DNA of 63,583 bases, counting the filler, from Reticulomyxa filosa (taxonomy: Eukaryota; Protista; Foraminifera): NCBI GenBank assembly GCA_000512085.1. It is 11 parts of 11 records of this genome, joined end to end, with 100 filler letters (N's around TTAATTAATTAA, not from the genome) between each part and the next. Parts side by side here need not be neighbours in the genome. Positions count along the whole stretch, not along the records: positions 12,094 to 39,076 come from ASPP01038724.1; 10 more parts are not named here. The stretch is one strand, 5' to 3'. Positions within the stretch are counted from its first letter, which is position 1; each line of letters starts with the position of its first letter. The notes under the pieces are model-generated. The model made no database searches. It was not told the origin of the DNA and saw nothing but the letters and a program-made list of their open reading frames with translations. This document shows, piece after piece, positions 2,587-39,076 of the stretch. A program made the position numbers and the translations under genes.

Positions 2587-5299
2587 TCAAAGTATTCCAC
2601 CACGTTGTTTCACAAGCATTTTTTGTTCATCTTCCAAACCTTTTGTATCCTTCCAAATACTTCCTTTCATTGATAAAACACTTTGAGTGCCTACTTTCCA
2701 AATATTATTTACCACACTAGTCTCAGTTACATCAACAATTTTACCATTATCACTACTCCATAATCGCATTGTTTTATCATCAGAACATGACACTAGTTTT
2801 GAACCATCGGGTGATAAATGAATACAATTAATATTTCTATTATGTCCTTCTAATACTTGAATTTGTTTTCCTGAAGAAATATCCCATATTCGAATCGTTT
2901 TGTCTGAATATGAAATAATTTTAGAACCATCCAATGAAAATTTTATTCCACGTATATCATCAGAATGCCCATTTAATATTTGAATTTGCTTTCCAGTCAA
3001 TACATCACATAATTCAATTATTTTATCAACGCAAATCGCAATTATATTACCATCCGGAGAAAATATTGCATCAATTACACGTTCACTTGCCTGGTATGAA
3101 AAAAGCTGTTTTCCAGATGATATATCACACACTAGAATATTATCCCATGAACACAATACAAATTTAGAATCATTTGGTGAAATTTGTATCATATTTGTGT
3201 AATGTGTATATCCTTCAAATATCTGAATTTGTTCATTAGATAATATATTCCATAATTTGATTGTATTATCTGAAAGAAATAGCATTCTATATCCATCTGA
3301 CAACAGTTGTGTATTAGGTATAGTATTTAATAATTGAATTTGTCTTCCTGATGATATATCCCATATTCGAATTTCATCAAGTGAGCGTGTTACAAGTTTG
3401 GAACTGTCTGATGAAAATAGCGCTTTTTTCACCCAATTTGAATGTCCTTCCAATAATTGAAGTTGTTTTCCTGATAATACATCCCATATTCGGATTGTTT
3501 TATCATCTGAATATGATGCAACTTTAAAACCATCTGGAGAAAATAATATTCCATTTATACTACCTGAATGGCCTTCAAATACTTGAATTTGTCTCCCTGA
3601 TTGTGCATCCCACAATCTAATTGTTTTATCCCCTGAACTTGATACAATTTTAGAACCATCAGGAGAAAATTGTACTGCTGTTATAACGTCTAGATAATCT
3701 CCTGTTAACTGAACTTTTCTTTCTAAAGAAATGTCCCATATTCGAATAGTACCATCTCTTGAACATGACAAAATTTTTGCTTCATTTGGAAAAAATTTCA
3801 CATTGAATATATACGATAAATGTCCTTCTAATAATTGAATTTGTTTTCCAGATGATACATCCCATAATCGAATTGTACCATCCCCTGAACCAGATACAAT
3901 TTTGGAACCATCAAGTGAAAAACTTGCTGTAGTCAAATCGCTTGTATTATCCTCAAGAACTTGCAATTGTTTTCCAGATAACAAATCCCATATTCGTATT
4001 GTTTTATCTTCTGAATAGGATAAGATATTTAAACCATCTGGTGATAATTGAATTCCATGTATATCATCTGTATGTTCCAATAATTGAAGTTGTTGACCTG
4101 TTAATGCATCCCATATTCGAACAGTTTTATCGTCTGAATATGATATAATCTTTGATCCATTGAATATGAATTGCACTCCAATTACCGTATCTTCATGTCC
4201 TTCTAATAATAGAAGTTGTGTTCCAGAAAATACATCCCATATTCGAATGGAGTTATCAGTTGAACATGAAACAATTTTAGAATCATCTGGTGAAAATTTT
4301 GCATTAACCACCCAACCTGAATGTCCACTTAATAATTGAGTTTCTTTCTCAGATGATACATCCCATATTCGAACAGTTTTGTCTTTTGAACAAGATACAA
4401 TCTTAGAATCATCTGATGAAAACTCTACTGAATTTACTTGATTTGAATGTCCTTTCAATAGTTGAATTTGTTGACCTGATAATACATCCCATATTCGAAT
4501 CGTATTTTCTGATGAATTTGATACAATTTTGGAACTATCGTGTGAAAACTGAACTGCGTTTATTTCATTTAAATTATATAGTACATGAAGTTGTTTTCTT
4601 GAGGATGTGTCCCATATTCTAATTGTGTCATCATTTGAATAAGATAGTATTTTCGTTCCATCTGGTGAAAATTGAATTCCCTTTATTGCATCTGAATGTC
4701 CTTCTAAATATGCATATTCTCCAAAGTAAGTATCGCTCATTGATGCATTTGTGAAATTAACCTTGGTTAAGCAAGATTGACGAAAATGCACATGATCCAA
4801 AATCGCATTGCTAAAATTAGTTCCTTCAAGAAATGCACAATCTAAAATTGCATAAGGAATTTTTATACTATTCCAATTTTGATAGCCCATATCAACATTA
4901 GCCGAATTGAGTATTGTGATCGCATTTGCTGCTGCAATACTAACGTTTTTATTATTCTTTGATGATTCAATAATCCTAAATAATCTTGATTTTAAATTTA
5001 CAAATATTGGATTTATGTCATGAATTCTCTCTGCAATAAATTGAATAATCCCCAATTCTTCGTTTAATAATTTATGATTGACACATAATTTTTGAACATG
5101 TTTTTCAAATTGTTGTTGAAATTGTTGATTATCGGCAGTAACAATATCAGGTTTCCATGAAATGATATCAAATATGATTTTTTGTGAAGCATAATATTCT
5201 TGACATGATTTATGTACAAATTGATATTTATTATCACCAACTCTTTTCAATACGAATTTTGCAATACTATCACCATTGAAATATTGTTCCCAAATATCA
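2587..5299 (-). CDS. NACHT/STAND-type protein, C-terminal part: winged-helix motif, pentapeptide repeats, ~15 WD40 repeats; 5' end cut by contig gap
   Basis: 887-aa intronless ORF. FVHKSCQEYYAS matches the NACHT-associated FxHxSxQEY motif. AILDCAFLEGTNFSNAIL... are pentapeptide repeats. LEGHS..V..V.FSPDGSKIVS.S.DKTIRIWD units recur. Confidence 0.9.
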
Positions 5300-5399: not shown

Positions 5400-8300
5400 A
5401 AAAAATAAGTCGAATGCAGACTCCAAATATTTTATTTCGATACTTTGGAGTCTTGTCATAAAGCGGAAGAAGAGAAAAAGGGAATACTTGCCAATGGAGC
5501 CATAAAGCACGGAAAAATGGATTTACAATATTGGATATTGACTTGCAAGATATTATGGTGCTGGTGCAATTATGTAGTATTCGATTTTTTGGGTCTTTTT
5601 CTTGCACGTTGTCAATCTTCTTTATCAGTTTGAAAAAAGAAGGGATGTCAATTGAAAAGTTACAAACGTGCCAACAAAACTGTTCTCATTATCATGATTT
5701 CATCCAATATTTTCCAAATGAGTCTCAATTAAAAACGAAATTAAACAATAGAAGATAATATTTTTTTGAGCTTACAATTACTGTAAAAAAGCATCATTGA
5801 ATCATTACCTGTGTCAAATTCGTTATAGAATAATACATTTTTTTTAGAATTTTCCATTTGATACAAAAAAGGCTATTAAATTGGTTCTTGCAAAACATTT
5901 ATCCTTTTTTAGTTTGAAAATTTTGTTCTATTGAATATTACAAAGAAAAGAATGGAAGAAAAATTTAGTTTTCCAATCACTGTTGGAACGGTTACCATCG
6001 ATCAAAAAAAAAAAAAAATACAATAGATTAAACATCATTTACGATTCCTTTAAACAAACAAGCATGCAAATTGAGAGGCAGCATTTTGCTTTTTTTCCAA
6101 TTGTGCAATGCCCCGCCGTGATCAAGATGTGTCATTGCGGTAAACTTGTTCAAAGAATATCGGGCACTGTTAACCAATATTAAATAATTGGTGTTGGCAG
6201 GATTGTCAACCGCACACTTTCACCGATTTGTGAGCTTATCCGTCCAGCGCCTTGCGTTGTTGCACAAATATTACTCCAGTGCCTTATTAAGTTCTTGAAT
6301 TCAATCATTTTCAAGCGAAGTTTACTCTCCACCAACTTTATCAATATCGTCGTTTTCGACTTTTATCTTGTAATTAAAAAAAGGAAGTGTATCTCATACA
6401 ACATTTTTTATCTTATTTTATTCGAGGTTTACTTTTTTAAAAAAGGATCTGCTCTTTCTATTGATGCAACTTTGAATTTATTTAAAAAAAAAAAAGAAAG
6501 AAATTAAAACTTACTCCAATGAACTGGTGACTAAGACACTTCCAAAGTGTGCTGACTAAGCTCCAGTCACTGTCAGTCTTTTTGGTTTGTTCAATTGCTC
6601 AAGTTCTACCAAGTTGTCTTTTTTTTTCCAACGAAACACGTCTGTTCCAAACAACTATCAGCAAAATATTCTCTTTGAAAAGATCCATTTGGACGATGAA
6701 TTGACAACAGAAGAAGAGAAGCGAGACTTTGATAACTGCATAGAAAAAGCATTAACACAAGAATTTTTTTTTTTGCAAAAACGAAAACGAAACACGCGTC
6801 TTTCGTACAAGTCTTTTTAAAGTAACAAAAATACTATCGCATTAAATTGTGTCAAGGAGATTGTGTTTTTTTTGCTTTATTCAAGTTTTTAGAGCAAAAA
6901 GGACTAATTATGTCAATAAAAGTAAAAACAAGAGTTTTTTCATCTTTTTGATTTCTCCCTCCAATATTATCCGTTTTCATAGGAACTGACCAAGTTCAAA
7001 TATTGAGAAATGATATAATAAACAAACAAATTTGATACAAAATAAATTTTTATTTTTTTTCCATTAGATACTGAATAACTTTACTTGGAAAAAATCATAA
7101 AACATCAAAAGACCCTAAGTTGAAGGTAAAAAAAAACCCCTTGCATCATCAAACTTATCATTAAAAGACAGGCTGTTATCATTTGGATCATATGTTGCCC
7201 AAGAAGAAATTGAAGATGAATCTCTTTACAAGCTTCTTTGTTGGAGAATAATAAAAAAGAAACGACGAAAGAACAAAGACAACTCAGAATTATCTCACAA
7301 CTTGAAAGAAGAAAAAAACGAAACAAGCATTGGATGAAGTGGACATGTCAAAGAGTGTTGAAGCGAATGTGAAAAAAAAAAAAACGAAGCTATGGTGACT
7401 ATTATTCACTTCTTCTCTTTTTTATGGATATCAATTGCTTCGAGGCGTCAATGCTGTGATGACTTGGTTTGTTAAATTTTTTTTTCTTTGTTGTTTGCAT
7501 TGACGATAATAATGATTGGATAAACAAACAACAGAAACAGACTTTCGATTTTCAGTTTTGACGACCCCCAAGGGACTTGAACGCACGTGCTTATTTCTAT
7601 TGATTATATCCAATGTGTGGATAGCAAGTTGAAGTTTTATTGTATACGCATAATTTGATCACAGAATAAAGCAATAATCTGAAGATAGAAGAGCGCTGGA
7701 TCTGGAGAGAATTGTCATTAAATTATTAATTTAAACTTAAAATTAATTAATTAAATAAAAATTCAAATATAATCAAATTCAAGTAAAGAAAAAGAAGACA
7801 AACAAAAGAAGAAAATGAACGCCATCGATGGAATGACCAGTAGTCTGGAAAATGCATATTTATCTAACTATTCAAGTAAACAAGGCCATAAGTGTAGTTG
7901 TGTGATGAAATGGAAACAACATATAGAACAAAAAAAAAAATTGGCAAAGATTATACAAAACTGGGACAATCAGAGCATCTCGCCATGACGGCCGTAAGTG
8001 TTCGTGTTGTTGGCCACTATGAAGGATTGCAAGCGATCCCACAACGCAAGTGGTTGCTTGCAGACCCTCCATTCATTAATAAAATTGTAGACCACTAAAT
8101 AATGTGATCCAATGCACCCCTGAGCGAGTCAATACCTATTGACACAAGCCACATGGCTGGTCATAAATAAGCCTCGTCGTGTGGAGTCGTCGCCTTTGAC
8201 TTGTTTACATGAGTGGACGATTTTCCTTGCAGGACTAGTGGCAAGGACGACTCATGTTGATGCAATTCCTGCATCAAATGCTTGGTCTACGGCGTGCGAA

Positions 8301-11300: not shown

Positions 11301-12152
11301 ATTACATCATATGCAAGTGTTTTATATACACGTTTACACATATATGTTTGTATATGTGTGTATGTGTCTATACTTAATTTAGTAAATTTTTTTAAAAATA
11401 AAAAAATAAGGTATTATTGAAATCAAACAATAAACTCGCGGAATCAGAAAGTATTATTATGATAGCGCGATTGTGCACCAAACGTATGGCAATAGTGGCG
11501 ATGTGAATATGAGTTATCTATATCTTTCAAAAATAGTACGATCACCGCACTTCTCAAAGACGGCATGCAGCTGTTGGCCAATGCAAATCTGTTTTTAGAA
11601 TAAAACAAAAAAGCGTCGATCACGTCGCAAAAGACAAAAAAACAAAGTTTGTAACTCCATTGGCGATGAGGACAAAGTGGTGGATGAGTTGGAAAATGGA
11701 GTTTTTGGAAAGTCTAGATCGACCATTTTCCAATGCTACCAACAGCAAATCCAGAGGAGCTACGACCAGCACCACAGGCTTGTCCAGTGTTGCCACAAAG
11801 TCTTTTGGGCCATATAGCATCACTTTAGGTAAAATGCTATTGATTGAAAAAGCACAAGTATTCTATCCATAAAATAATTCTCCAGCAGCCACTTTATCAA
11901 ATGTAATGGCAACACACAATAGAGATAGATATAATTGAATTGTCTTTGGCAAGTGACAACTATTGCAATCTTCATGTTGGTATTAACTACTTTNNNNNNN
12001 NNNNNNNNNNNNNNNNNNNNNNNNNNNNNNNNNNNNNTTAATTAATTAANNNNNNNNNNNNNNNNNNNNNNNNNNNNNNNNNNNNNNNNNNNNCTTGAGT
12101 GGTCAATGTATTGAAGCGTTGTTTGCGTTGGAAAAAAAAAAAAAAAAAAAAG

Positions 12153-14691
12153 ATTGTCCAATTGCTGTCGCTGTATCATGCCGTTCTCTTAACACATTTT
12201 GATGTGACATATTACCCAATGCTGTCATTGCTGATCAATGGGTCCAACCCAAAACGTTATTACATTCCATGGCGTGACAATGAACACTGGAATTCTCGTC
12301 GAAACAAACCCAATCTGCCACCTGTGGAGGAACAGTTGCCATTTTTGAAACAAAAATATCTTCGAACCCAAGAAATATATCACGAATACCTGCGCAAATC
12401 GCCAAGTCATATTCCAATCAAAAATCTGAGCGAGTTAAAAAAAACAGACTATGGAGTCGCCGCTATGGTCAGTGAGGAAGAAATACAACAGCTATTTAGT
12501 CAAAATTCGTGGTGCGAAATGAACACCAAATGCAAATTGTGGGCTTTGCTTCAACAAGTCCTTACTGTAAAAGCTGAAATTCGAAATAGAGATTTACAAA
12601 TTGATGTCACTACTGCCCATTTGGTTAATTTCACCTTTTTTTTTTAAAAAAAAAAAAAAAGAAAAAAATTGAATGAATCGTATATGTACATATATATGTA
12701 TGTGTATGTGTATATGAATATGTATATTGTAACATATACAGATCGTAAAAGACAAAATATCTGTCAGCAACGATCTGCTGTTGCATACATTATTTACTCA
12801 AATGTTTGTGAAGCAATTGCACCAATTGAAATGTGTGCCAAAAACACAAGCGCTAGTACAAACAATTGACAGTCTACGCGAGTTTTGCGTGGGCCTGCAG
12901 TCCATCATTGACCAATGCATGGACGACATGCAGACGTACTACTTTACAATGGATTTGAATTTGGACTTGGACCAAGCAAGACATGAATATTCTCAAAACA
13001 CCGAAATGATATCGTATTTTGAAAACATAAGAAAGGTGGTGCAATCCTTGTGTCAATGCTACGCATTGGTGCAAAAGAGTCATGACCATCGTTTGAACTC
13101 GTTCAACAAAGAGTTTCGAGACCATTGGAAAGAGTGTGTGAATGGATTGGACGAATTGCGGTCGTTCATCAAACAACACACCGAACTTGCCTCTTCTCCA
13201 AGCGCAACAACTTGGAAAACGCCTCAAATCTCCAAACTGTCCGACGTCAACCTGTCCTTCGAGGCCGGCGATGACAACAGTGACGATGAAGAAGAGGCAG
13301 ACGAAGAAGATGACGAAGACGATGGCGACGACGAAGAGGAATTGGACGTAGCTAACGAAAATGAAAAGACTAGTCAAGAACAACAAAAACAAAAGCGCAA
13401 GCATGTGTCTCCCGAACTCGACAGTCAAGAAAGTAAGACGCAAACTTTGGCCATTGAAGCTATGACAAAAGAAACCGATAAGAAAATGGGTCGCTTGGTG
13501 TTGCAATCTATGTGGTTATTGTTACATGCTATCGTTGAAAAATTTGAACATTTGCAAAAATTATATGATGAAATTACTAAAAATTTATTGCGCTTGGTAT
13601 GTGTATATGTATATATGCATATACATATATATATATATATATATATATGCATATATATATTAGTATGATTTCAAACATAGAAACAAAAGAAATTGCCAAG
13701 CAACAATGAACAACATATCTCTCCAGTACTGTTAGTGAAAGGCCTGGAAGTAGTGATGCTGATTATAACGACGTTGCAATTGGATTCGAAGGTGATGAAA
13801 CATAAATTGGAAGACAGCGAAACAGACAAAGAAAAGGCCAATACCACAAAAAAACCTGCGTCATCTTCTTCGAGCTCTTCATTTGCAATTCCAAAACAAA
13901 TACTCCATCCCAATCTAGTTCGCGATTGGATTGCCAAAACGATTTTGAACGACTTGGATTGTTGGCTGCACACGTATGGACATAACAATGGAAGTCGACA
14001 TGAGCCCAACAAAGATATTGTTCACAAGCATATTTGGTCATCATTTTTTCCAGATATTTTGGACGACAGTTTGAGTTTGTGCGTGGACATGATCTCCAAG
14101 TCATTGGATAAAATGCTGCCAAAGAACGACCCCATCACGATATCCTCGATGAAATTGTCGAGTTATCACGGCAGTGAGATCCAGAACCGACTCCAAACGA
14201 TCAGCAACAGCAACAAGATATTCAGTGGAAGAGCAGAAGAGCGACCGTTTAAGGACTTTAGCAATCACATTCAAACGTGGCTGCGGAACAAATATCAAGA
14301 ATTAGCGCATGAGTGTATTGTTAAGCAATGTCAGGCGGCATTACGTTGCTATCAATGGATAATTCCATGCATGAGTAAGCAAGCGACCATTTGTGAGTGG
14401 TTGCAAATTGACAGTGGTGTTCCGTGCCATCATATCAACGCCGCCGGTGTCGCTTCGGCTACTTCTTTGCAAAGATCATCGTCGTTGGCAGGATTTGCAG
14501 CACCACCCGTTGTCACTGCTGCCGCACTGCCGCAGAACATGACTTCCAATCCGCGCGACGATATTCATTCCGACATGCTGCACTTGCCATTCCACAGCAG
14601 TGATCGTGCAGAGTCTATTCATCCCAACAGCAACACGAACACAAACGCTACCAATAGCAATAACAATAATAATGGCAACAATAACAACAAC

Positions 14692-14730
<39 letters not shown>

Positions 14731-17164
14731 GCGAATAACAATAACAACAATTCAACCAATAACAGTAATGGCAGCGCACAACATAATGTGCTATCCTTTT
14801 CATATTTGGATCAGTTGCTGAATTATGAAGAACATCCATTGGATAGCTATTATCCTCTTCATCTCAACACCAATCGCTTTTTGCAGTACTTGCACCATTT
14901 GCAAAAGCAATGCAAATTGAATATCAATGATATGAATAAATTCAAAGAAAATGTCTATGCGACATTGGAGAAGGAAATCATGTCTGGACTGGATGACTGG
15001 GACAACGACATAAATCACAGAATGCAAAAGTACGAGAGCAATTCGAGCTTAAAAGTGGCGGAGAAAACCGTGCTATCAGTCCAGCAATCTGCATTTTTAC
15101 AAGTCAACCCACCACTGCTCCCAGAGTCCAAATCAGGGAAAACCAACGTACACTCGTCTTCGATGACAACATCAGCAGACAATGCCAAAGTCCAGGCCTT
15201 GGACACAGCCGATCTTCGCAATGAAAATGAAAAGCAAGGAGGTAACAACTCAGCTTCGAAGAAAGTGGCGAAAACGGAAAAAAAAATTGGATCGACAAAG
15301 GGAAAAGAGTGATGTTAAAAGAGGTGATGGTGATGATGACGATGAAGAAGAAGAAGAAGAAGAAGACGAAGAGGAAGAGGAAGAAGACGACGACGAGGTC
15401 GATGATAATAACAATGGAGATAATGCATTTGTCACTACAAATGAAAACGACGAACGTGTGGAAGTGACAATTCGCGAATGTTTGCAAGATATGAGTAAGC
15501 ACAAAAAGAATTGGAATGACCGAATGTCGCGCAGCGAAGAGTTATTACATGTTGTGGAAACTGTAGGTGATTTGGAGAGTAGCAGATGCTCCCATTACAA
15601 GCCTTTCAAAGTGATATTATGCATCATGGAGCATTTGAAATGCAACAAAAAATCGTGGTTTGAAAAAGCTGAAAACGACAATCTTGTGACATTACATAGT
15701 GTCAATGAAAGTGGTGGTTCCTCTTTGCTGGCCAAAAAGAAACACAAACGTTCCAGAAAGCGCAAGGCCAACAACAACAATGCCAACCCCACCACTCCTT
15801 TGTTCAGTGCAATTGTTCCCAATAACGAGGAGGCCATTCCCTCGAGCGATCTCATTGCAGATATCAATTCCAGCGCGACAGAAGACGCCAGTACCAGCGG
15901 CGAAGCCAAGACCTGGTTCAATTTCAGTCATAACGGAGCGGAAATTGATTCGTTTGTAAATCATCATTGCAAAGAGCTGGAAGAGTACATGAGCGAAATG
16001 ACAAAGGAATTCAATCAATTGCAACCGTTGCTCGACTTGTGCTGCAAATTTGTGGACAGCGAATGCTATTTGTATTTGCTGAGTATGAGGGTGTCGTCCA
16101 ATTACAAGAAGATCACAACCAAATACAAAATTATGACCAAGTCGATTTTGGAGAATTGGTCCAGCTTATCCCCAGAAGACAAAAATAAAAATGCCAATAA
16201 ACAAAAAGCGTTAGAAATTTTGTTTAAAGAGTGTTGTCATTTCCCATTCATTTTTGTTTGGAAGGACAACAATCCATCCGCAATTACCGCAATGGAACGA
16301 TTTCTCTCCAGTGAAAATGCTCGACCTTTTTCATAGCTAAGCAATATATATATATATATATGTATATATATGTACATTTTTTTTTTTTTTTTTTTGAGAC
16401 GTTCCTTTTTCAAAATATTGATATTTTATTTATGTATATATAATTTTTTTTTTTTTTTTTTTCCTCTCTCTCCCACTCTCCTCCTTTCAAACAGCTCTTC
16501 TGGAGGCCTGATGGACACACTTCTCGATTTCAGCCAAGACTTGGAAAACTTACAAATTGGTATTTCGTTTGTGCTGCTGAGAGGCTTGAAAGATCGAAGT
16601 GAAACAGGCATTGCCACAAACGCTGCTCGCGAGGTCGACGACAACGATGACGAGGACGATGACTTGGGAGAAGACGCAGACGAAGAACAAAAGGACGAAT
16701 CGCACGTGAAAAAAGAAGGAACATCTTCTTCCAACGCACATTCGAATCGTGAAAAGCACGTTTCTCCCACCAACATCAACAAAGACATCATTTCTTATTA
16801 TATCACTTTAAATCGAGACTGGGACGAAAACAATCTTCGAAGTGAACGAGGCTTTGATGCCGTGAAAACCATCGGCTACAAACTACACGGTCTGGACGTC
16901 TGTGCTGCGGAAAACGAGTCCAATCCCACCGCTGTGCTTGGTGTAAAACATCAACTCAACACCAAACTGTCGTTGCTTATGGGGTGCTATGAAATGATTG
17001 GAAATCAAATACCCTTTTCTTCCACTGATCATTCCCAAATTAACAATACTTGGACCAAGGATGCCAAGAGTCGTGCTAAGAAGCAATTGGATCAAATGAT
17101 CACCCATGCAATGGATCCCACACGATTATGTCAAATGTACGAAGGATGGACTCCTTGGGTGTAA
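12153..17164 (+). CDS. SMG1: SMG1-like PIKK, C-terminal part (post-kinase insertion and FATC domain), multi-exon
   Basis: Exons at about 12153-12624, 12742-13596, 13681-16335 (probable poly-A frameshift near 15280) and 16495-17164. Ends LDQMITHAMDPTRLCQMYEGWTPWV*, an SMG1-type FATC. Confidence 0.8.
14655..14752 (+). repeat. (AAT/AAC)n microsatellite encoding poly-Asn
   Basis: Visible triplet run inside the coding exon. Confidence 0.9.
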
Positions 17165-19941: not shown

Positions 19942-21161
19942 ATGCGCTCTTCTTCCTCTTGTTTGATACGCTATACATCTGTTAACCTTGACCATTGTAT
20001 CTCAACCAAAAAACAAATTTTGTTAGGAAATATTTTAAGAGTTGTGCATGTCCACAAGCTAAAAAAATTTGAAGTTTTGAAAACACAATACATTAGATAT
20101 TCCAATTAAGCAAGGGCAATTTTTTACATAACAAAAAATCGTTCCATACTATCGCGTCTAACTTAAATTTTTGGACTCATGGCAAACGTGCTGTACAATA
20201 TATACAAAATGTGAACACACCGAAATTATCCGCGCACACCACAATAATAAGAAATTTCACAACACGCATTGATACAAGTAAAGACTACTATGCAACATTA
20301 GGTATTTCAAGGTCGTCATCAACAAAAGACGTGCGAAGCGCTTACATTAAACTAGCAAAAGAATGGCATCCAGATGTGCATATGACAAAATCCGAAAGAG
20401 AAAAGGAAACCGTGAAGCGAAAATTTCAGTTAAAAAAAGAAACGAAAATATACGAATAACCATACAATATAATGTAACTCAATACAATAAAAACATTCAA
20501 TTAGAGAAATTCAAGAAGCGTATGAAATTTTAAGTGACGAATCACTTCGAAAAAAATATGATGAGATGCGACGATTGGAAACACGTTTTCATTATCGCAA
20601 TACGAACTCAAATAATAGTGGTTACAAAACATCGTACACTCGAAATGCAGAGAACGATTGGGAGCGGCTATTTCGGTCTCAAATGCAAGCGGAATGGGAA
20701 AAAATGCGCTCTCAACAACAACAACAACGTTATAATCGTTACTATTCTAATCCTTTTTTTGGTACAAATTTATATTTTGGCCAGGGATTGGGCTCTGCAT
20801 TGGGTCTCTTCATGTCCGTGTTTGTGATCATATTTGTGACCCGGTTTGTCGTCGACCTCTTTTTGCTTTCGAGGCAACCACGTCCTGAAACCAATCGAAC
20901 TCGAGATAAACCTAGGTAAATATTTATTTCTGGATGTTTTGAGTTGTATCAAATGACCATTGTGTTTTTTTGGGAAGACTTCAAAATCCATGGGATGAAT
21001 GGAAGATAAATGGGCCTGCATCATCTTCCGACTCACCGCAGACACAACTGCGAAGACATCGAGAAGAACAAGATAGAAAAAATGACCAGGAAAATCGAGG
21101 TTCTCGGTTTGAACCACCACCTCCAGCATTTACTCCAGTTTCAAGGAAAAACAATTCATAA
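19942..21161 (+). CDS. DnaJ/Hsp40 J-domain protein with putative organellar presequence and a C-terminal TM helix
   Basis: [12 protein letters not shown]...[12 protein letters not shown]...KFQ|[19 protein letters not shown]; hydrophobic [17 protein letters not shown]. First exon [13 protein letters not shown] inferred from phase-0 splice sites. Confidence 0.85.
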
Positions 21162-21534: not shown

Positions 21535-21607
21535 GTACCCCTACTTTTTTTTAAATGGTTCAGGAAAAACACCACAAAGGTGGATTTCCGTCATTTTGTA
21601 GGTGTAC
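21535..21607 (-). promoter_or_regulatory. Candidate SECIS element in the 3' UTR of the deiodinase-like gene
   Basis: Minus strand reads GUACACCUAC-AAA-AUGAC-GGAAAUCCACC-UUUGU-GGUGUUUUUCC-UGAA-CCAUUU(A)8-GUAGGGGUAC. It has a UGAN/UGAA core, an ~11-bp upper helix and a 9/10-bp lower helix, ~75 nt after the stop. Confidence 0.6.
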
Positions 21608-21681: not shown

Positions 21682-23147
21682 TTACTCAAATCTGTGACTC
21701 AATTCCAGATACAAATCGTTCAGATCGTAATAGCCTGGATTTTTAGGTTCAAGAATGAACGAAATGTGGTTATCTTCAATGATAAAAGCTCGAAGTGGCC
21801 AAGCGGCATACGTTTGTTCAAAGTTATTCTCCATCGTGTCAACGAATACAGGAAATGCAAATTTGTGTTCCTTTTTGAATGTCGTGGCCATGGAACATCT
21901 GTCTTGGGATGTTCGATGTTGTTTGATGCACAATTCGGATTTGGTTCGAATGGGCCATTCATCCACGGCATGCGCTTCAGTGATGTAAACGCACACAAAA
22001 TTGCACACGTCCCCGAATACATCTAGCATTGCATTCAAGAACGGTACGTTGACACGAAAGGGTGGTCAGGTCACACTGCCGCTAATGACCACTGTCGGCT
22101 TTCTGTCGACGAGTTCGCTCAATCTTATCTCTTGCTGTGAGCATGTTAAAAGCGGTACGTCTTTGTATATGTCTCCAACGCGCAGTTCACCGCGACGAGC
22201 TCGATTGTATTTCAGATAAAAAGCAGCATTTTTGATCTCCACATCATTTGGATACAGAGTGCGAGCAGCTCGTAACATCTGCAAAGCATAGGTCACTTCG
22301 GTGTCCGTCTTGTAACCGAATTCGTGTACGACCTTCTTTTGAAATGTCTCAATACTCCAAGGGATGAACACCTCATTTGACGACTCACCCAGCTTTTTTG
22401 TCCGTTCGTATTGCGAGGACTCATCTTCCAAGCAGTCCAACATTTCCTTGCCCAATCTTATCTCATTCTCACGTTTCAACATCTTCAATAACGTTTCTCG
22501 TGTTATTGCAGAGCAAGTTTCGGGACATTTGGTTGGCTGTATAGGAGCGTACATTTTGATATGATACATTTGCCCCCCCCCTTTTTTTTTGTTCATAACA
22601 TATACGTATTTTTATAAAATTTTTTTTTTTTTGAACTGCAGAACAAAAATCAAAATTGATCCTCCCGTTCATTGACGCCATCATCAGGGCCATCATCATC
22701 CTTCCGCTCGAACGTTTTTCTTTCACTTCCAAAATACTAGGATTGCTGCTGCAAAGAGCACGCAATGACCTAGAAATTAAGGTTATATTGTTGAATTTTG
22801 TCACACTGGCGGCAACTGTTTTCTTGTCGAGTTGCACGGTTACGGTCCTGTCATTTTCGTTAACTGTTATTTTTAGTACTTGTTCTTTTTCTTCTTCGCC
22901 AATCCAAAAGACGAGCGGATATTTCGTTGAATACCACTAATGCATGCATTTTTTTTTTTTGTATACGTACTTTTTCTTGTTTGTTTAGACCTCGTTCCAA
23001 ACATTTTTTACTAACCTTTTTGTCCCCTTTTGTGAAATTCCATCTGTTTTTGTTGTTATCTGGTAAAAAGGACAAAGTGTCTTCATCAGATTTCATTTTG
23101 CTGTCAACAGGCTTTTCTACTTCTTTGGTCTCATCAAAAGTGGCCAT
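21682..23147 (-). CDS. Iodothyronine-deiodinase-like selenoprotein with in-frame UGA at 22066-22068; three exons
   Basis: ORFs 22066..22596 and 21682..22038 are one frame separated only by TGA: KPTVVISGSVT-U-PPFRVNV...FVCVYITEAHAVDEWP...DTMENNFEQTYAAWPLRAFII. This matches the deiodinase motifs GSCTUPPF, YIxEAH..DxW and DxMxN...Y.A.PxR. Confidence 0.88.
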
Positions 23148-28401: not shown

Positions 28402-28884
28402 TCATTCTACACACCAAACTTCAACATTACGAATTTCAAAGTCACCGTTTGTATTGTCAACTAAGCGAGGGCAGCGCAATCCAGCACATTTAGTTGATGT
28501 GCCGTGATTTAGATGTTTGTCCAAATAAATGGCAGTACTAGTGCTTTTTGATTTGTATAATGTGTGACGCAATAATTGTCATCCAGTCTGTTGTAAGCAC
28601 AAGTATACATAACACTTGACGCAAAGAAAAACAAAGACATACCTATCTCCAATTGCCATGTAATCTTTATTGGCAAATATTACACTCATTTGATTTTCAA
28701 TATGTATTGATTTTGGTATTCCAGATCGCCTCTTTTTTTTAACATTTATATTTTTGTTCCATGCTTCCAGTTGTTTGTTGTCTTCCTCATTTTCATGAGT
28801 GCGCTTGCTATTTGGCACAGAAGCCGACAAATTATCAAATTTGTGGATGTCTGTGAAAGAATCATGATTGTGTTTGAAATACAT
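28402..28884 (-). pseudogene. TLDc-domain gene fragment; 5' part degraded or lying in the repeat
   Basis: IFANKDYMAIGD| then TAIYLDKHLNHGTSTKCAGLRCPRLVDNTNGDFEIRNVEVWCVE*, the typical TLDc C-terminus (LxLDxxLxxGxS..C...L...F.I..VEVW). Confidence 0.65.
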
Positions 28885-29493
28885 GTACGTCTTTCGTTCA
28901 TCTTTTTGCTGTTTTCAATTTAACTTATTAAGACGAAAATTCATGTGACAAAATATCACTTGTAATATTTATTGATTGTCAATTTGTGAAATAAATAATG
29001 ATCAATATTTTTTTTAAAAAAATTTTTTAAAGTATTTTGTAATGGAATGCCGTTATTTGTTGGAATAGATCTTTTTGTGGCTTCTTACTTAAATCTAACA
29101 CTTTACTCACTCACACAAGAGCTGGCACGCATTATAACCAGAATGGTGATAGTTCGTCGTTCAAAATGCATACACACAAGGTAGTCAAACACAATGACGT
29201 TGTGAGAACGTGTGCATTTTGACGCATTGTGTTTTTTTGGGGGTTTACCTGCTTGTTGTTTTTTTTTTAGAACCTGTTTTTTGTGTGAGTTTTTCGTTGT
29301 TGTAACGTAATTATTCAAAATTAATGTTTTGAACTTTTTACTTTACTATTTTTGATAAAACAATATATATTTCTCTAAATGTTTTTCGAAAAAAAACATT
29401 GAATCTTTTTTCAGTATAAATATTAACTGCAACTAGTGAGATGAAACAATTTTTGATTGTAAAAAAAATTAAATATCTTGAAAGTTTGCCACA
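28872..29493 (+). repeat. Direct repeat, copy 2 (~620 bp)
   Basis: Matches copy 1 with small indels and substitutions. Confidence 0.9.
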
Positions 29494-29809
29494 ACGAATT
29501 TAAACTATAATATAGCACAGTAAAAGAATAATACTGTTTAATGTTGGCATTGTAATACCGTAGAGGCCAAGTTCTCAGATACCCGACTTGAAACAGGTAA
29601 ACTTAAACGTTTTCTGAACGTTCACAGGGATGGCGAAATTATTTCTATTTTGTAATTATCCTTCATCATTATTTTTTGTTTTATGTGGAACTGATGTCTG
29701 GCCGATCTTATTTCACAGAGACTCAGTGGAGACAAGAACAAGAGAGAATTCCTCTTGTGAGGATTAGAGCAAGCCTACATTTGTTTGGTTATAGAGTAAA
29801 TATGTTGAC

Positions 29810-31401
29810 ATGATGAAAAGTAATTTTTTGTTTTGTGTGATTTACATTCAGGAAAGCATTCAAAATACATTACATGAATATCTTTTGGGGATGTTGGACC
29901 CCAGCATTAAAAATGTTCGCATCCATGAGTGTGTAGAAAAATTATTGAAAGTGAATAGCGAATGGTCGAAGCTTTGTGACGATCGTGCGGCAGTTACCTT
30001 ACTGTCAAAGGAAGAAGCAACATTTGAATATGTACTATTTGAACAATCGGTAAAAGGTATGAAATGTTTAGTGACCTTCCATGAAAAACTGCGAGCATTG
30101 ATTGAGAGCAAATCTCATCCCACTATCCCCACAACTCCTACTATCGCAACACCTCCTATCAATCATGCAACTTCAAAAGTTGATCTGAAACAATTGGCTT
30201 CTTTTTACAAGACAATTTACCCAAAGACGATTTCCAATGACCAAAGTGCTGATATCGATTACCTGCAATTCATTGGTTTGTTGTTGTTGTTGTTATATAT
30301 TTTGAAACTTTTTTTTTTAAAAAAAAAGGACTGAAAAAAAAAAAAAAAAAAAAAAAAGATATAAAGTATATTGAATTATTGATAAAAACGATTGAACTGC
30401 TGACAAAGAGCTTTGAGAGGTTGCCAGAAATAAGTGAGAATGAAATAGATCTATGTGACCAAGTGTTGAAAGAGTGGACGAAACTGGATGGCTGGTACTT
30501 ACGCCAAGTGCCCAATGGCAGTGTGTGGAAACAACACTTATTGCAAAGTATGTATCAATGGCTCATTCGATTTCTCAACAAAGTCCCGTGGTCGAATGTT
30601 GCCTCGAACATCAATGTGAAATGGAAATTTTGTGAGTCGATCAACAAAATCATTAACATACACTTGTCACCCAATTTGTTACTATCGCGAAATCCAATCG
30701 ATGTTTGGATTAAGGCAGACACTGAAAGAAATATCACTCGCGATGATGTGGTCCACGAGGGACACATTCATGGCAATCAAGACTCGACTCATCACCAATC
30801 CAACGATGGAGTGTTGTGGTGCACTTTTATGCAATTTATCGATGCGTATATCTATCAACTCGGATTTTGCACGGGTGTTAACATCATCCATCAACTCTTT
30901 GTGGAAGACATTACGTACATGGATTACATCATTCTTGTTTCCATCTCTTTTCGAGCTTTGCTTATTCAATACTTTTGCAAATGGCTGTGTCACAAAGGTA
31001 GATTGGGTGGTGCCCCCTCTTTTTCTATGCGCCGCTCCTCAATCACACGTGTTTGTGTCCTTGCACTTGCAATAGACACGCACGACGAAAAAATCGCATT
31101 ATTTGTCAGCAAGCAGGCAATCCAATGCGTTGGGTACAAACTGCATGAACTGAGTCATCAGACTCCAGAGTGGTACAGTCGAGAGGAAAGAGAAACGCTG
31201 TTCTGCTTTTTTTTACAAATTTTGGGAAATGTCATGTCAAGTCAACCATCCGCACAAGCAAACAATATCGTTGTACGCGACATTGTCCAAATATTGGTGT
31301 CTATTTTGTATCGTTGTGAATTGGGCAGTACTGTGAAAAATAAAAAATATGCTGCTTGGAATGTCCAATCGAGTCATTACAATACCAACGTCAATAATAA
31401 C

Positions 31402-31496
<95 letters not shown>

Positions 31497-34400
31497 TGAA
31501 AATGTAATGAATAAAGCATCACTAGTCACAAATGACACATTGGCCAATGTGAATGTTCAATCCTCTTTTCTCGCAGTCGAAAATAAAAACACAAAAAGCA
31601 AAAAGAAAAAAAAGAATAACAGTGTGTTATTGTTATCCAACGCATTTTCAAAACGAAGCATTGCGATTATTCAAAATGGTGAAATTTACCAACATGTGGA
31701 GTCTTTGTTCCTGTTGCCAACTTGGTTCAGTTGTTTTTTTTGTTGTATGCTATAAGACAAGAACAAAATGTAAAACAAACAAATAAACAGTCCTTTGATT
31801 CGAGAAAACGGACGATTAATGGAATTACTTGTTCGCATATTGTACAAATTTCGAGTTTGTAATATTTGGAATCGAATAGAAAATAGTCAGGACATGCTAT
31901 CACAATTGTCTGTATGTTTGTCATTGTTGTCGTTATCATGGCTGCCATATGCAGCCCGTTGCGGCAGCAACAGCCAAAGCATTACGACGCTTTCGACTAG
32001 TGGGACAGTGCACAGTGCACTGGCAAACTTGGGGTCGGAGGATGCGACGCATGCGTCGTTGCACCATCACAGCAATGTACTGATGATCGATTTGCTGGTG
32101 AGATGGGTGGACACCATTGTGCAGAAGCGATCGAATCGCATATCCTATTGTCAATTGGATCAATTGGCACAAGTGTTTAGTCATTTGTCATTGTTCCCTG
32201 ATGACAACGTGCGGATTCGAGTGGCCATGTCGATGAAAGAGATATTGCAAGACCTGTGTGTGAATCTCAAAGTATTTGATCACAGTCGCATTTTTTCCGT
32301 TTGGGCCGAAACAGCGTTGGCGAGAATATCCGACTCCAACGCCAAAGTTGTCAAAGTTTTTTTGAAAATTTTGGAGTTTAGTGGAATGGCAGTGGTGCAA
32401 AGAGAGCCCTTTTATCGATATGTCTCCACGCATCCAAGTTTAATTTTTTTGTTTTCTTCAAACTAACTTTGTTACAAAGTAACAAATAACAATAATAATA
32501 ATAATAATAATAATTCGCACTGCTTTGTTTTAAACTTAAACACATATCAATGCAACACAAAGATGGAGTAATTCCGTCGATGCGACAAATAATGATTCAG
32601 CCATTGTCAAACAAGTTCCAAAGTCGTGACTTTCCCGAGCTGTTGCAGTACTTTGTCTCCAACGTCGACACAAAAAAGAACTTGCAGTCGTTTGACATCT
32701 ATTCCGTGTCCAATTCGTGGGGATCGAAAAGCAAGCATTACGGCAATGTGCCGTCGGACGAAAAAGTGTTGCAAAAAAAGGCAGTGCAGTTCAAGAATGA
32801 GGAGTCAAAGGAGTACTTTGTGAATTTGTGCACCTATTGGTACGAGCAGATGGATGACAGTTCGTCTAGCACCAATGCTTTGCGAAAAAACTTTGGAAAC
32901 AAAAACGTCAGTTACAATAGCAGTCACAATGCAATTGTGTCGCAAAGTGTTCGCAATGACTGCATTACGTATCATTGGTTGGCACACAACATGGTGCAGT
33001 TTATGATCCAAAATAATTTGCAAACTCCTTTAGGAGACGCGGTTAAATCGCTACGAACATTGCAACAATATTTGAAAGGTTTTGATCCAATTTTTTTTTT
33101 TCCTCCCACGTAAATGATATGACAAACAAATGTGCTCAGCAAATATGTAAAATATAAACAATACCACAAATACAGCCAATCGTCCCAATAGTCATCGCTA
33201 CTGGCACTACATTCAGTTCTTAGACTTGATCGAAAAATACATGTTTGACATTTACAATGGAAGCACCAGTTTGCGGACGTATCATTGGATTTGTGCGCTG
33301 TCTCCACAAAGCAATGACAGCAACAATAACGTGGTAATGTTTTTTATCGGAAATCGCAAAATGTGTGAGCTGTTTTTCAATCGTGACTTGCGACCTTTGA
33401 TCGTCGAGCAGTGCAGTAAGCACTTGTTCTCACAAGCGCCGTTGATCTATCATGCCACCGAACACGTGCTGTACGTCTTTGCGCGGTTTCACAAGACGTG
33501 CTCGAATACGTCTGATGGCAATGACGTCACCGAAAAACACATTGCAGCATATGAGGCTTTGAATCAAGGCCTGTATCATCTGTGTCACGCTTTGTTGCTC
33601 TGCAAGGACTCCAATGCTTTGTGCGGCGTCAAAGACTGGTTTCTCAAAAAATTAACTCCAAAGTCGGACACGCTGGCCCAAATGAAATGGTTCGATCTAA
33701 CGTGGATTCAAGGCATGATTTGTCAGGCCAACGAACAATTGGACGATGCTATTGTTCATTACCAACAATTCATGAGCAATTGTAAAGCAAAAGAGCAATC
33801 CTCTTCCATTTACTCTGATTATTTGTTCCAAAAATGTGCACAACTGATGTATCAAGTTAATCCGACAAAGTATTCTTTTTTTTTTTTTTTTAACTTTTTT
33901 CAAAAATTTATTTTATTTTATTTTATTTTATTTTATTTAAAGTGCCATTTCGGATTAATGAATTGGGCAAAGTTAAACGAAATCCTAATGGATTTATCCG
34001 ATACATTTGAATTGCAATCCAAGTCGATGAATGAATCATTGAGACTGTTTGATAAATACGAACTCAAACAAGCAAATGATCTGCTTTCGCAATGGGAAAT
34101 TGACAGTACCATCAATCCAATCAAAGGCAACGTTGACATCAGCCAATGCGATAAGTTATATGACCTAACCAATAAATATCATTTGCAGTCCTTATTGTAT
34201 CTGCATGAATTGGAAGCATTGCACGACAACAAGAACAATCAAAAGGAAGTGTTGATTCAAAAATTACGCAATTCTATCAAACACACCAAAGTCATTTTGA
34301 AAGACCCTTTGAAAGTAGCTTCTCATGGATCTTTTCAGGTCAGTGCTATTCTTTGACACTTGTCTTTGTTTAGTGTTACAATTAGCGTCTTTGACATCCA

Positions 34401-36821
34401 AATAAACAAACCAATAAAAAAAAAGGATCATTTTCCATTGCTAATTCGATTACAATGCATGCGAGCAATTGAACTAAAAGATATGAACGTGTTGAATCCT
34501 TTGATTCATCAAGTCGACATCAATGAAGCCATGGTATTTAATGACCATTGTAATTTTGACAAATTTTCAGTGATCAACGGCTGTGATAACCACGGTATGC
34601 TTTGGGTATGGCGCACCATGCGAGGCTTATCAAGTTTGAAAAGCGTTGACAGCACCATGACCGATGAACAAAAGATTGCGTGTCGTAACTTTCATGACAG
34701 TTTGGTGAGATGGAATATCATACGTGGTAATTTCGAAATGGCCACGGGATTGCTTCCAAAGTCGATTATCGACTCCCCTGCGAGGTTGTTTTTACTACAT
34801 ATTTAAATGTTACCAGCAACAACAAAGAAAAATTCGATATCCTGTCCTCGTGGATTGGAGCCATCCATTTCCTGAACACTTCCATGGCCCAACATCCAGA
34901 CTGTGTCCGATATACCAATTACATGCACTTACATGTCGGAGAGTTATTGAAGTATTGGAGTCTAAAGGTATTCACGAAACATATAATGTGTGCAATTTTC
35001 TTTTGGTGACACATTTCGTTATCTTGTGTATGTGTAGTAAATGAAACACAACATCCAATAAAACTACATTACCTATAAAAAAAAAAGGAAAACAAAGGAT
35101 TGGAATTTTGGCAACAAGTATTGACGTTATTATCTGGAAATGCGATAGACGGTGTGAAGGAGTTTGAAAGTAAATTGAGCCTTTGTAGTAACGACGTAGA
35201 GAAGAAGTCAGATATCGAGGTGGTGCGCAGTAAAGCAATTGGTATTTGCTGGTTCGAAGCGGTGACAAAGTATAACTTGGGCAAAGGCAATTGGCTGCGA
35301 TTGGCAACATACAGCAGAGATTTGGCAGAAAAGCTGTGCTTTTCGACGTATATGGACCAAACATGTTCCATTGAAATGGCATTGAGTCATTTGTCAATGG
35401 AAAATCGCAAGGAAAATGAAGCGTCGAATGAAGAGAAAATCGCATCAATCGACTTGGATAAAAAAAAAATCGTTCGAATCAATGAAATTATGATCGACGT
35501 CATGAATGAAGTGTACTTCAAAAACAATTATCAGCCTTCGCAAAACCCAGAAACATTAGTATTTGGTGTGTGTGTATTTTTTTTAAAAATGTATTACAAA
35601 TATAATATAATTCAAGTTTGCAACATTATGACAAGAAGATATTTTGTTTTTTTTCTCCTCAAAGCAACACTAAGACGGCAATTAAATGATTACAACCTAA
35701 CGCCAATGCAATTGGAAAAACTCCACAGTATGCTGATGAATCGCATGCGACTAAAAACCCAATGCTTGAATGTTTGTGTGGAGAGCTATGGAAATATACT
35801 GTCACGTGGGTCGTACGACTCCTATCCATTGAAGGACCCGGGGACATTGGAAACGGACGTCGATGCCATGAGCATGTGTTTGGAATTGTTTACCATATTG
35901 TGTAATCATGGCAATGATTTGCAACAGTCCTTTGTTATCAATTCCATAGTGGAAAATACGCCTTCGAATGTGTGGTCGAAACTGACTCCGCAGTTGTTTT
36001 CACGATTGTCTCACAGCCATCCGTTTATTCGTCAATGCATCGAACAATTGGTTATGCGGGTCGCACATTTCCATCCCTCCGAAGTCATGTTCCCAGTGTT
36101 GTCTCGACTCTCTCAAAACACTTTGGTGACCAAAAATAAACGAAAGGCGAGGGATGGACATACCAATACCGTGGTGGATTCACATCAGGATCCGAACAAC
36201 AGTCATCACAACTCGTCTTTGCAAACAGCTTTGATAAGGACATTGAACAAATTGAAGGAAGACGTGAGATTGAGACATGTTCTGCACGAGGTCTTTGATA
36301 TGCTCCAAGAGCTATTGCGGATCTCTATTTTATGGGAGGATCAGTGGATACAATCTTTGAATGAAATCAAACACATGGTACCCTCGAGACTGAAGATTTT
36401 GGCTAACGAATTGGACTTGGTTAAAAAGCGAGGAGTGGGTAAGGATCACACCTGCGGCAATCTAATTAGCAGTGGCAAAGACTCGTACGTCATCGTCTCG
36501 CGACAACAAGAGAAGGAGCTTGAATTATTTAAGGAAAGGTATCACTTGGTGATGGCTCCAATTTTAGACATTTTCAATGTGTTGGAAAGAGAAACATTGT
36601 TCGTGAATGCAACCACTCCACATGAACGCTCGTTCCAGCATCGACATGGCAAAGACATTGGACATTTGCTAAAATGCGTTCGTAATCCCAGTTGGGAGGA
36701 GCTGTCTGCAAACAATATCTATCAACAATTTTGGGAAAATCATATTTTGCCAATGATCAATGATCTGTTATTCCAATTCCAATTTCCGAATTATTCTTAT
36801 CACTTTCAACCCAATGATAAC

Positions 36822-36853
<32 letters not shown>

Positions 36854-39027
36854 TAATAATAACAACACTCATGTCAATCCAAGTTTACACAAAAATCCTG
36901 AAAAAAAAGGAGGGCGCACGGTTGGAACAACCAATGCAGCGCAGCCACCAATGGTTGCAAGTGGTCATTGTATTTGGAGTTTGGCAGACATTAGTCCGAA
37001 ATTAGCGCAAATTCAGGGCTCCTCCATCTCCTTGCCCGGAATGGAACACTCGAGTGGGACCTTGATGATGTCCGCAGGGGTCAATTATTCTTATTCCGAT
37101 AGTATCCACAATGGCAACAACCTTAGCAAAACCACTCAAGAGTGGTTAGATGGAGCGGAAGAATCTGAGGACGTGATAAGATTATATTCCATTGCCAGTG
37201 CTGTCGAGGTCATCAAATCCAAAGTTATAACGTATACATTTCGTCTCCATGCACACACATATTGTTACTTTTTATTTATGATTCGACTTCATATGTCTGA
37301 ATATTATATACACATATAAATATACCTAACTTTAAAAAAAAAGACACGTCCCAAAAAAATGACGTTTCTTGGAGAAAATGGCAAGCAATTTCAATATCTA
37401 TTAAAATCCCGAGAGGACTTGAATTTGGATGAACGTGTTATGCAATTTTTACAAATAACGAATGGTTATTTGGAAAACCGTAAACGAACCGGAGGAATCC
37501 AATATCCGTTAACAGCCAAAAAATCCTCAAGCACGACCAAAGAAGAGCTACTCCCAGGATCGCACTTGTCACGAGCATTAGACGTTCGAACAAGGTGGTA
37601 TTCGGTGATTCCTTTGGATAAGAAAACGGGTTTAATTCGATTTGTGGATCATTGCACGCCATTATTTTCGATTTACAAGGCGTGGCAAGACAACTTTGGT
37701 CGTAATCTACAAGATATCGAGCAAATGTCGAAAAAAGAGAAAACCGAGTACAAAAAAAACAAAGGAACAGCAATGGATACATTTCGCTTGCTTGTGAACG
37801 AAGAATTGAAACAGGCCAATCCCTCGTGGAGCGTGGACACATTGCCACGCGATAAATGGCCATTCGAAATATTGATGAAAGTTTTTAACGAGTTGTCTTC
37901 CCGTGTTCCCAAGGATTTGTTGGCAAAAGAGTTGTGGTGTTCCAGTGCTCTCATTGAAGATTATATGCAAAAGTCAACCAGTACGTTTTTTTCAAATTCA
38001 AACAACACACACAAATATATATATGTATATATATTTATATATATTATATACATATATATATATATATATATGTCCATAACTAATGGTCCAAATGTCTGCT
38101 CACAGCCTTCAGTCGGTCCGTTGCCGTGTCGAGTGTTTTGGGATGGCTAATCGGCTTGGGAGACAGACACATCGGAAACATTCTATTAGATTTTCGCACC
38201 GGTGAAGTGATTCATATTGATTACAATGTGTGCTTTGAAAAAGGAATGAGTCTCCGAATTCCGGAGTTGGTTCCATTTCGATTGACTCGCACCATCCATG
38301 GCGCATTAGGATTAAATGGAATGACCAATACGTATGGACATTTTTATGCGACCGCAAGTCAAATGTTGATACTTTTGCAAGACCATTGGCGTGTATTTGT
38401 TCAATTGTTTTCCGCTTTTGTCTACGACCCGATATCGGAGTGGCTATCCACTGCTTCCGCAGACTATGTGCAAAGACAAATCTTGGATTTGACGATGAGT
38501 TTGGAATTAATTTATTCGCGATTGTCCGCGACGAGTATAGAAACACACAACCGAGTCGCTCACGCCACCAATGCCAGCAAGACAGCCACGACCAGGCCTA
38601 TCCAAAGTCCATCCATGACAAAACTGGTTGACAAAGCATGGGAAGTATTGTTTAAAATGGTTACCAAAGGTCTTGTTTTATTTTTAAGTTGTGTCTGTTT
38701 TTTCGGAACAAACCAATGTGTAACCTTTGTGTATGTGTACAACTAGTCCATCAATGGAGTAAGTATTCGCTCTATCCACAATCGTTGATTTTGTCGGCTC
38801 TCGAAAAAACCAAAAAGCGTATTTGTGGCGCCTTAAATGATCTGAGCTATGGTCGCTTGGAGTCCTTTGATACAATGTTAAGACAAACAAGTTACGGGTT
38901 TGTTCGACTCAAGACTGTGACCAATCGAATGCCGGCAAAATACGGCGGCTTAGTGCAAGAGCGAGCGGAAGAGGCTGATGTGACCTTGTCTAAATTAATG
39001 AATATTAATACTGACATTACTTCCAAA
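29810..39027 (+). CDS. SMG1: SMG1-like PI3K-related kinase: N-terminal HEAT/FAT region and kinase domain, multi-exon; cut at contig end; true start uncertain
   Basis: VWSKLTPQLFSRLSHSHPFIR, ELLRISILWEDQW, SK|TRPKKMTFLGENGKQFQYLLKSREDLNLDERVMQFL, DLLAKELW, GWLIGLGDRHIGNILLDFRTGEVIHIDYNVCFEKG..LRIPELVPFRLT, AFVYDPISEW. Confidence 0.88.
31393..31497 (+). repeat. (AAT)n microsatellite, ~35 Asn codons
   Basis: Visible in the sequence; a shorter run lies at ~36817-36866. Confidence 0.95.
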
Positions 39028-39036
39028 GTTTGGTGT

Positions 39037-39076
<40 letters not shown>

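Follow-up and report, generated by a model that had tools for sequence, protein, structure and literature searches.

A putative soluble deiodinase-like selenoprotein with a C10-like helical bundle in Reticulomyxa filosa, and its relatives in eukaryotes and giant viruses

Deiodinase-like (DI-like) selenoproteins of Dictyostelium, fungi, protists and bacteria have already been published alongside the animal iodothyronine deiodinases, DIO1-3 (PF00837; PDB 4TR3, 9H48), in which a linker and a membrane helix stabilise the dimer (PMC11592359). The protein encoded by the Reticulomyxa filosa gene described here is like DIO1-3 in its fold with the deiodinase insertion, in S-x-T-U-P-P-F, in the relay residues and in the SECIS core, yet it has no membrane helix, carrying a C10-like bundle and an M-x4-[SN]GR motif there instead, shows Pro for the Phe gate and no proximal Cys, comes from a host without known thyroid hormone, and its putative compact SECIS is without the conserved apical AA. 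The bacterial deiodinase-like proteins, which are of the UxxC type (PMC13188914; NCBIfam NF038285), have an equal catalytic fold, whereas the R. filosa protein has U-P-P-F. With the DI-like selenoproteins of Dictyostelium (PMC2375036) and of the chytrid Gonapodya prolifera (bioRxiv 10.1101/314781), as they appear in the accessible portions of the two reports, it has in common that all are Sec-containing deiodinase homologs outside animals; those portions do not describe the N-terminal domain, the C10 relation, the motif, viral members or a compact SECIS.

A preliminary description of the locus had presented it as a distinct selenoprotein of a protist, of which the Sec read-through and the solubility have stood, whereas the distinctness was overstated in view of the protist/fungal deiodinase-like selenoproteins already described (PMC2375036; bioRxiv 10.1101/314781). 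It also read the gene correctly as far as the TGA is concerned, without touching on the splicing, the relation to C10 or the SECIS, or on the motif upstream and the viral representatives of the family. Neither the C10-like fusion, the motif partner, giant-virus copies of a deiodinase-like selenoprotein nor the compact SECIS were found in the open literature searched, the coverage of which is incomplete. We offer, tentatively and at odds below even, the reading that these genes belong to a selenoenzyme system that is widespread in eukaryotes and giant viruses but has so far escaped recognition, in which a C12orf57-like and a deiodinase-like Sec domain work with an M-x4-[SN]GR peptide, present in cis or provided by a ubiquitin fusion, and which is translated in foraminifera by means of a minimal AA-less SECIS. 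If true, C12orf57 would have been an ancestral partner of redox/dehalogenase chemistry, and giant viruses would exploit the Sec recoding of their host.

Gene model and spread of the family

The window, i.e., the whole stretch of 63,583 nt that was analysed, consists of joined parts of the R. filosa assembly GCA_000512085.1, one of which is the 27-kb piece (ASPP01038724.1) carrying the gene (Table 1). A minus-strand ORF (22596-22066) ends in GSVT-TGA, and the same frame then continues with PPF up to the TAA, which bears out the original claim of two same-frame ORFs split by one TGA at the deiodinase Sec site (GSVT-U-PPF). Since a paralog in the same assembly (L010; NCBI ETO22704.1, “deiodinase”) agrees with it in the positions of both introns and in the TGA, we infer a model of 428 aa from three exons, in which the choice of the exon-1 donor is probable rather than certain: a later in-frame donor at 22970 would yield 443 aa instead. 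The NCBI model of this paralog bypasses the TGA by means of an invented intron, an instance of gene callers splitting, as had been expected, or mangling such a gene. The window gene, the paralog and soil-derived sequences form one clade in the tree (support 100/99), and the ~100-aa module of exon 2 gave no match against Pfam and PDB. As the top 19-residue hydropathy before the TGA is 0.8, the protein has no membrane helix ahead of its catalytic domain, in agreement with the anchorless protein proposed initially.

Table 1. Features of the deiodinase-like gene (window positions).
Feature	Position	Strand	Description
Whole gene	23147-21682	(-)	Three exons, ~428 aa, one in-frame TGA (codon 301)
Exon 1	23016..23147	(-)	Starts with the ATG at 23147; would reach 22971 with an alternative in-frame donor; main donor position common with the R. 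filosa paralog
Intron 1	22937..23015	(-)	GT-AG, 79 nt; predicted from homology
Exon 2	22637..22936	(-)	~100-aa clade-specific N-terminal module
M-x4-[SN]GRxxF motif	22652..22681	(-)	Here MASMNGRINF; conserved in homologs
Intron 2	22537..22636	(-)	GT-AG, 100 nt; position shared with the R. filosa paralog; lacking in those homolog contigs that have no introns
Exon 3	21682..22536	(-)	C10-like helical domain and deiodinase-like catalytic domain; TAA end at 21684-21682
C10/C12orf57-like helical bundle	22204..22506	(-)	~100 aa; Pfam P_C10 through homologs; AF2 model
Deiodinase-like catalytic domain	21685..22194	(-)	Thioredoxin/peroxiredoxin fold; S-x-T-U-P-P-F and Y/E/H/W/H relay residues
In-frame TGA	22066..22068	(-)	Codon 301, putative selenocysteine
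Compact SECIS-like hairpin	21559..21594	(-)	88 nt 3' of the stop: AUGAC core, 27-nt stem-loop, UGAA; without apical AA

A profile search for the upstream block returned 931 clusters at 50% identity, and ~900 such sequence clusters are stored in databases as truncated hypothetical proteins. The block can hence no longer be regarded as novel to the organism, as was initially proposed: it is a widespread domain, apparently related to Pfam P_C10. Carriers that could be named are R. filosa, Euglypha rotunda, Physarum and the chytrid G. prolifera, in addition to foraminiferan relatives and two giant viruses, and no relatives were found in GTDB genomes and phages by a search of limited sensitivity. 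In G. prolifera (L014:2501-4075, KQ965736.1), what is annotated as a hypothetical protein with a ZZ domain corresponds to the 5' half of a Sec gene laid out as ZZ domain, helical block, TGA and deiodinase half, and this gene is probably the DI-like one of bioRxiv 10.1101/314781. A long SECIS-like stem of canonical appearance begins at 3991 of the same locus.

Catalytic half, in-frame TGA and SECIS-like hairpin

Downstream of the TGA, the deiodinase motifs reported initially are intact (EAH, DEW, DTMEN and WPLR are all present), and this half matches the Pfam T4_deiodinase family, as had been anticipated, with 73.1 bits (gathering score 27, E 2.7e-20) and the solved mouse structures of Dio2 (E 1e-11) and Dio3 (E 1e-9). 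Residues S127, T129, Y157, E160, H162, W167, H182 and K241 of Dio2 correspond to S298, T300, Y328, E331, H333, W338, H351 and K409 of the window protein, in which the deiodinase insertion and the proton-relay residues are kept; the last (second) His and the Lys vary within the family and are not universal, and the gate residue (F224 in Dio2, F258 in Dio3) is Pro in all aligned family members. For a natural Cys homolog of full length, the AlphaFold2 model (pLDDT 85.7, pTM 0.80) shows the helical domain joined to a thioredoxin fold, and Foldseek placed it closest to Dio3 (E 4e-14) and Dio2 (E 3e-13), other thioredoxin-fold proteins scoring far worse. The window domain would thus seem to work like a deiodinase core, yet it falls outside DIO1-3 proper. 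NCBIfam NF038285 matches the C-terminal half of the window protein with E 5e-17 and 62 bits, against a cut-off of 250; in the Cys homolog P0095, the match envelope of this model covers the helical block (10-237 on 99-321/347).

The first nine homologs of the upstream block that were looked at all end at GS[VI]T (9/9), and 203/223 of those retrieved terminate at the same motif, so that homologs stopping at the Sec site, as well as the Cys forms that also exist, were encountered much as the preliminary description had envisaged. The TGA and an in-frame deiodinase half were seen in every Sec-type locus opened (L001-L006, L009-L011, L014-L016, L019 and L023, among them nine intron-free or metagenomic contigs, R. 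filosa, G. prolifera and two viral contigs), with a frameshift further downstream of the TGA in L006 and one intron in L003. Over the 60 codons after the TGA, mismatches among seven homologous loci fall mostly on third codon positions, and this bias, together with the 203/223 sequences ending at the motif, argues that the arrangement is not due to chance. The natural Cys homologs carry C-P-P-C, one of them sitting on a eukaryotic contig. A tRNA search of the 27-kb piece found none, and literature searches for the Sec machinery of the host (tRNA-Sec, eEFSec, SBP2) returned nothing.

Judging by these comparisons, the UGA is almost certainly read as selenocysteine. It is highly improbable that translation really ends at the TGA or that splicing removes the codon, which would leave two proteins, a pseudogene, or an intron in the manner of NCBI, whose paralog model indeed omits the codon, as the TGA and the frame are kept in members as far apart as foraminiferan relatives, a chytrid and viruses, the TGA is present in intron-free contigs as well, the third-position bias sets in directly past it, and it falls on the catalytic position. 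More improbable still is a variant genetic code, with TGA decoded as Trp or Cys: a few database entries do have W at the site, but these are best explained as the code-4 output of a gene caller, because cluster mates of the same protein stop there, and such a code is further at odds with the TGA of the window gene being its only one, its conserved Trp codons being TGG, and SECIS-like elements lying downstream.

With regard to these elements, a strict hairpin rule derived from the window gene and L001 also fits L004, L006 and L011, and on both strands of the 27-kb piece the window hairpin is its sole match. The rule missed both of two prospective UTRs (L015 and L016) and was then relaxed, each of these UTRs having one near variant of the strict hairpin (38-nt stem; G-U first pair). 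Under the relaxed rule, the element is found 62-132 nt past the stop in 7/7 complete UTRs of the clade and in none of their antisense strands, shuffled UTRs match at rates of 0.3-4% each, and the whole 27-kb piece holds three matches; two UTRs contain a second SECIS-like hairpin ~325 nt after the stop (L001:1349 and L015:1721), the two being alike. The core of the compact hairpins is UGAN/KGAW, and its 3' part is KGAW, the published SECIS 3' core consensus (PMC3753652), in 9/9 hairpins, although the rule itself demanded only NGAN. Each of the first ten positions of the stem forms a pair in 7-9 of the nine, with up to five pair types, and the pairs covary. None of the hairpins of the clade has a conserved apical AA, Rfam SECIS_1 does not recognise the compact ones, and a search for such a hairpin in L003 found none. 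Since an AA-less SECIS is noted for G. prolifera in bioRxiv 10.1101/314781, the AA-less state is unusual, not unprecedented. The compact hairpin may well be what directs Sec insertion. Escaping the standard models, this SECIS type could reveal the foraminiferan selenoproteome and serve for testing which SECIS features are truly required.

Helical block, upstream motif and giant-virus copies

C12orf57, for which the present family supplies a fusion context, is the human Temtamy syndrome protein and is poorly understood. It has been described as lacking homology to known proteins and reported to bind CAMK4 (PMC11838199), and it is predicted to be a five-helix bundle and to bind ANKRD50 (PMC13478489). 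C12orf57/GRCC10 (PF14974) and the window protein both have a ~100-aa helical bundle, and profile matches are significant in family members, but C12orf57 is a stand-alone protein of 126 aa, whereas the domain described here is part of a selenoenzyme fusion. Pfam scans of family members retrieved P_C10 in 11/91 and 4/64, other families hitting the block once each. The best of these, P0039, reaches 31.6 bits (cut-off 27, E 1.8e-7) over positions 9-89 of 103 (~80% of the model), and shares 35% identity with the window block (E 3e-28); the matches of 14 further members are weak, and the window protein gave no match to P_C10 in Pfam. The AF2 model of the window block is a compact helical bundle (pLDDT 90.8) that agrees in helix count with the five predicted for C12orf57; the block gave no match among solved structures, the nearest shape in the Atlas being a rotifer cluster. 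Through its homologs, the block is thus very probably homologous to C10/C12orf57.

What lies upstream of the block varies between F-box, ZZ, SAM, C1, ubiquitin, ribosomal S30, membrane segments or the exon-2 module. L003:3001-4229 (P0008) and P0007 have gained two predicted membrane segments ahead of the motif. Of 77 homologs whose N-termini are long, 45 have the motif itself, M-x4-[SN]GRxxF, ahead of the bundle (0.15% in shuffles), mostly at a distance of 26-45 aa from the helical block.

Among the viral contigs, L019 (IMGVR_UViG_3300038696_000475; a contig of 118 kb from IMG/VR, which has a giant-virus capsid gene nearby) carries the enzyme (5962-6930) with its TGA and a canonical SECIS-like element (Rfam SECIS_1 E 0.007, under the gathering score), and the two genes adjoining the enzyme are ubiquitin fusions ending in GG-M[FL]HxTSGR. 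L023 (giant-virus MAG GVMAG-M-3300014493-9), found by a DNA search for the ubiquitin-GG-motif alone, carries the enzyme (3730-4710) with its TGA, an AAA-type SECIS-like element, and a motif gene 1-1.5 kb from the enzyme; of the four viral contigs returned by that search, two other motif-bearing ones had no enzyme in the DNA retrieved. The viral SECIS-like elements have the apical AA. Both viral enzymes are without the motif, and a motif-bearing ubiquitin fusion lies within 1.5 kb of each; that the two enzymes are only 38-48% identical and differ in orientation to the partner gene argues for a retained linkage (on two contigs only). In the cellular member P0017, ubiquitin, motif and enzyme form a single chain.

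The glutathione peroxidases of poxviruses are viral selenoproteins whose UGA-Sec genes depend on the host machinery. The genes of L019 and L023 are of a different family and lie on contigs of Nucleocytoviricota-type giant viruses, in which selenoprotein genes with a SECIS would thereby be indicated. A motif-less clade (support 100/98; P0184, P0189, P0194, P0196, P0197, P0200, P0203, P0206, P0211, P0213 and P0215) groups with the viral gene of L019 and lies on DNA-type contigs, its members being probably further viral copies. Directly after ubiquitin, GG-M[FYL]HxTSGR is recurrent in giant viruses (L019:3862-5827, L021:1813, L022:1867 and 3060, L023:5524, L025:1274). In L019, a AAAATTGA-type motif lies upstream as well.

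Possible chemistry and neighbouring genes

That all of this amounts to one soluble Sec enzyme with deiodinase-like dehalogenase chemistry, a C10-like lid and motif docking is the reading we favour, at a probability of roughly 0.6. The spliced mRNA would be translated through the UGA as Sec by way of the compact SECIS-like 3'-UTR hairpin, and the selenolate would attack the substrate, the protons coming from the conserved Ser/Thr/Tyr/Glu/His/His network, the residues of which are present and the chemistry of which is presumed. The outcome would be reductive halogen removal from a phenolic ring other than that of thyroid hormone (e.g., halophenols, halotyrosines), and such halo-aromatic reductive dehalogenation is the most likely single reaction, if at odds just short of even. 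The C10-like bundle would replace the membrane helix and linker of DIOs and act as a dimerisation lid and docking site, a role suggested by its occupying their position. The M-x4-[SN]GRxxF peptide might dock in cis, linking the variable modules (F-box, ubiquitin, membrane segments, clade-specific module), or in trans from a neighbouring ubiquitin fusion, as in the two giant viruses; we give such docking an even chance. A soluble deiodinase-like enzyme would be an easier object of study than the membrane-bound DIOs, which makes the pre-thyroid-hormone role of deiodinases testable.

Two parts of this reading have competitors. The block could merely resemble C10/C12orf57 by convergence and be an independent domain, which is in line with most members, the window protein included, falling below significance, with the ease at which small helical bundles are matched, and with the relation resting on sequence profiles; nevertheless, P_C10 is the only family matched repeatedly on the block (15 members in two sets), one member exceeds the curated cut-off across most of the model, and convergence is accordingly quite unlikely. 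Less so, if still on the unlikely side, is the option of the same selenoprotein being a protein-directed or general oxidoreductase (disulfide, peroxide, methionine-sulfoxide) tied to the ubiquitin system, for which M-x4-[SN]GR, exposed by cleavage behind ubiquitin-GG, would be a substrate or recruitment tag and not a structural dock. The CxxC of the Cys homologs (C-P-P-C) fits a general oxidoreductase, Pro stands at the thioredoxin cis-Pro position where deiodinases have the Phe gate, ubiquitin, F-box, ZZ and ribosomal S30 are among the modules to which the enzyme is fused, the motif sits straight after ubiquitin-GG in the viral neighbours, and dehalogenation has no obvious use to a giant virus. 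Against this option, the deiodinase-specific insertion and relay residues, which general thioredoxin-fold reductases are without, have been kept, and the motif is internal in most cellular members, not behind GG.

As for the surroundings of the gene, its convergent neighbour at window ~20400-20919 (+) looks by eye like the terminal part of a J-domain protein that has a membrane segment, and a Pfam scan of the ORF gave no match. The end of the piece (28500-39076, +) is taken up by a large PIKK kinase gene of several exons (HEAT, FRB-like, PI3/4-kinase), with an SMG1-like layout, and the FATC-ending C-terminal part of such a PIKK gene lies at its start (12094-17164, +), the two parts at opposite ends representing either tandem copies or a permuted assembly.
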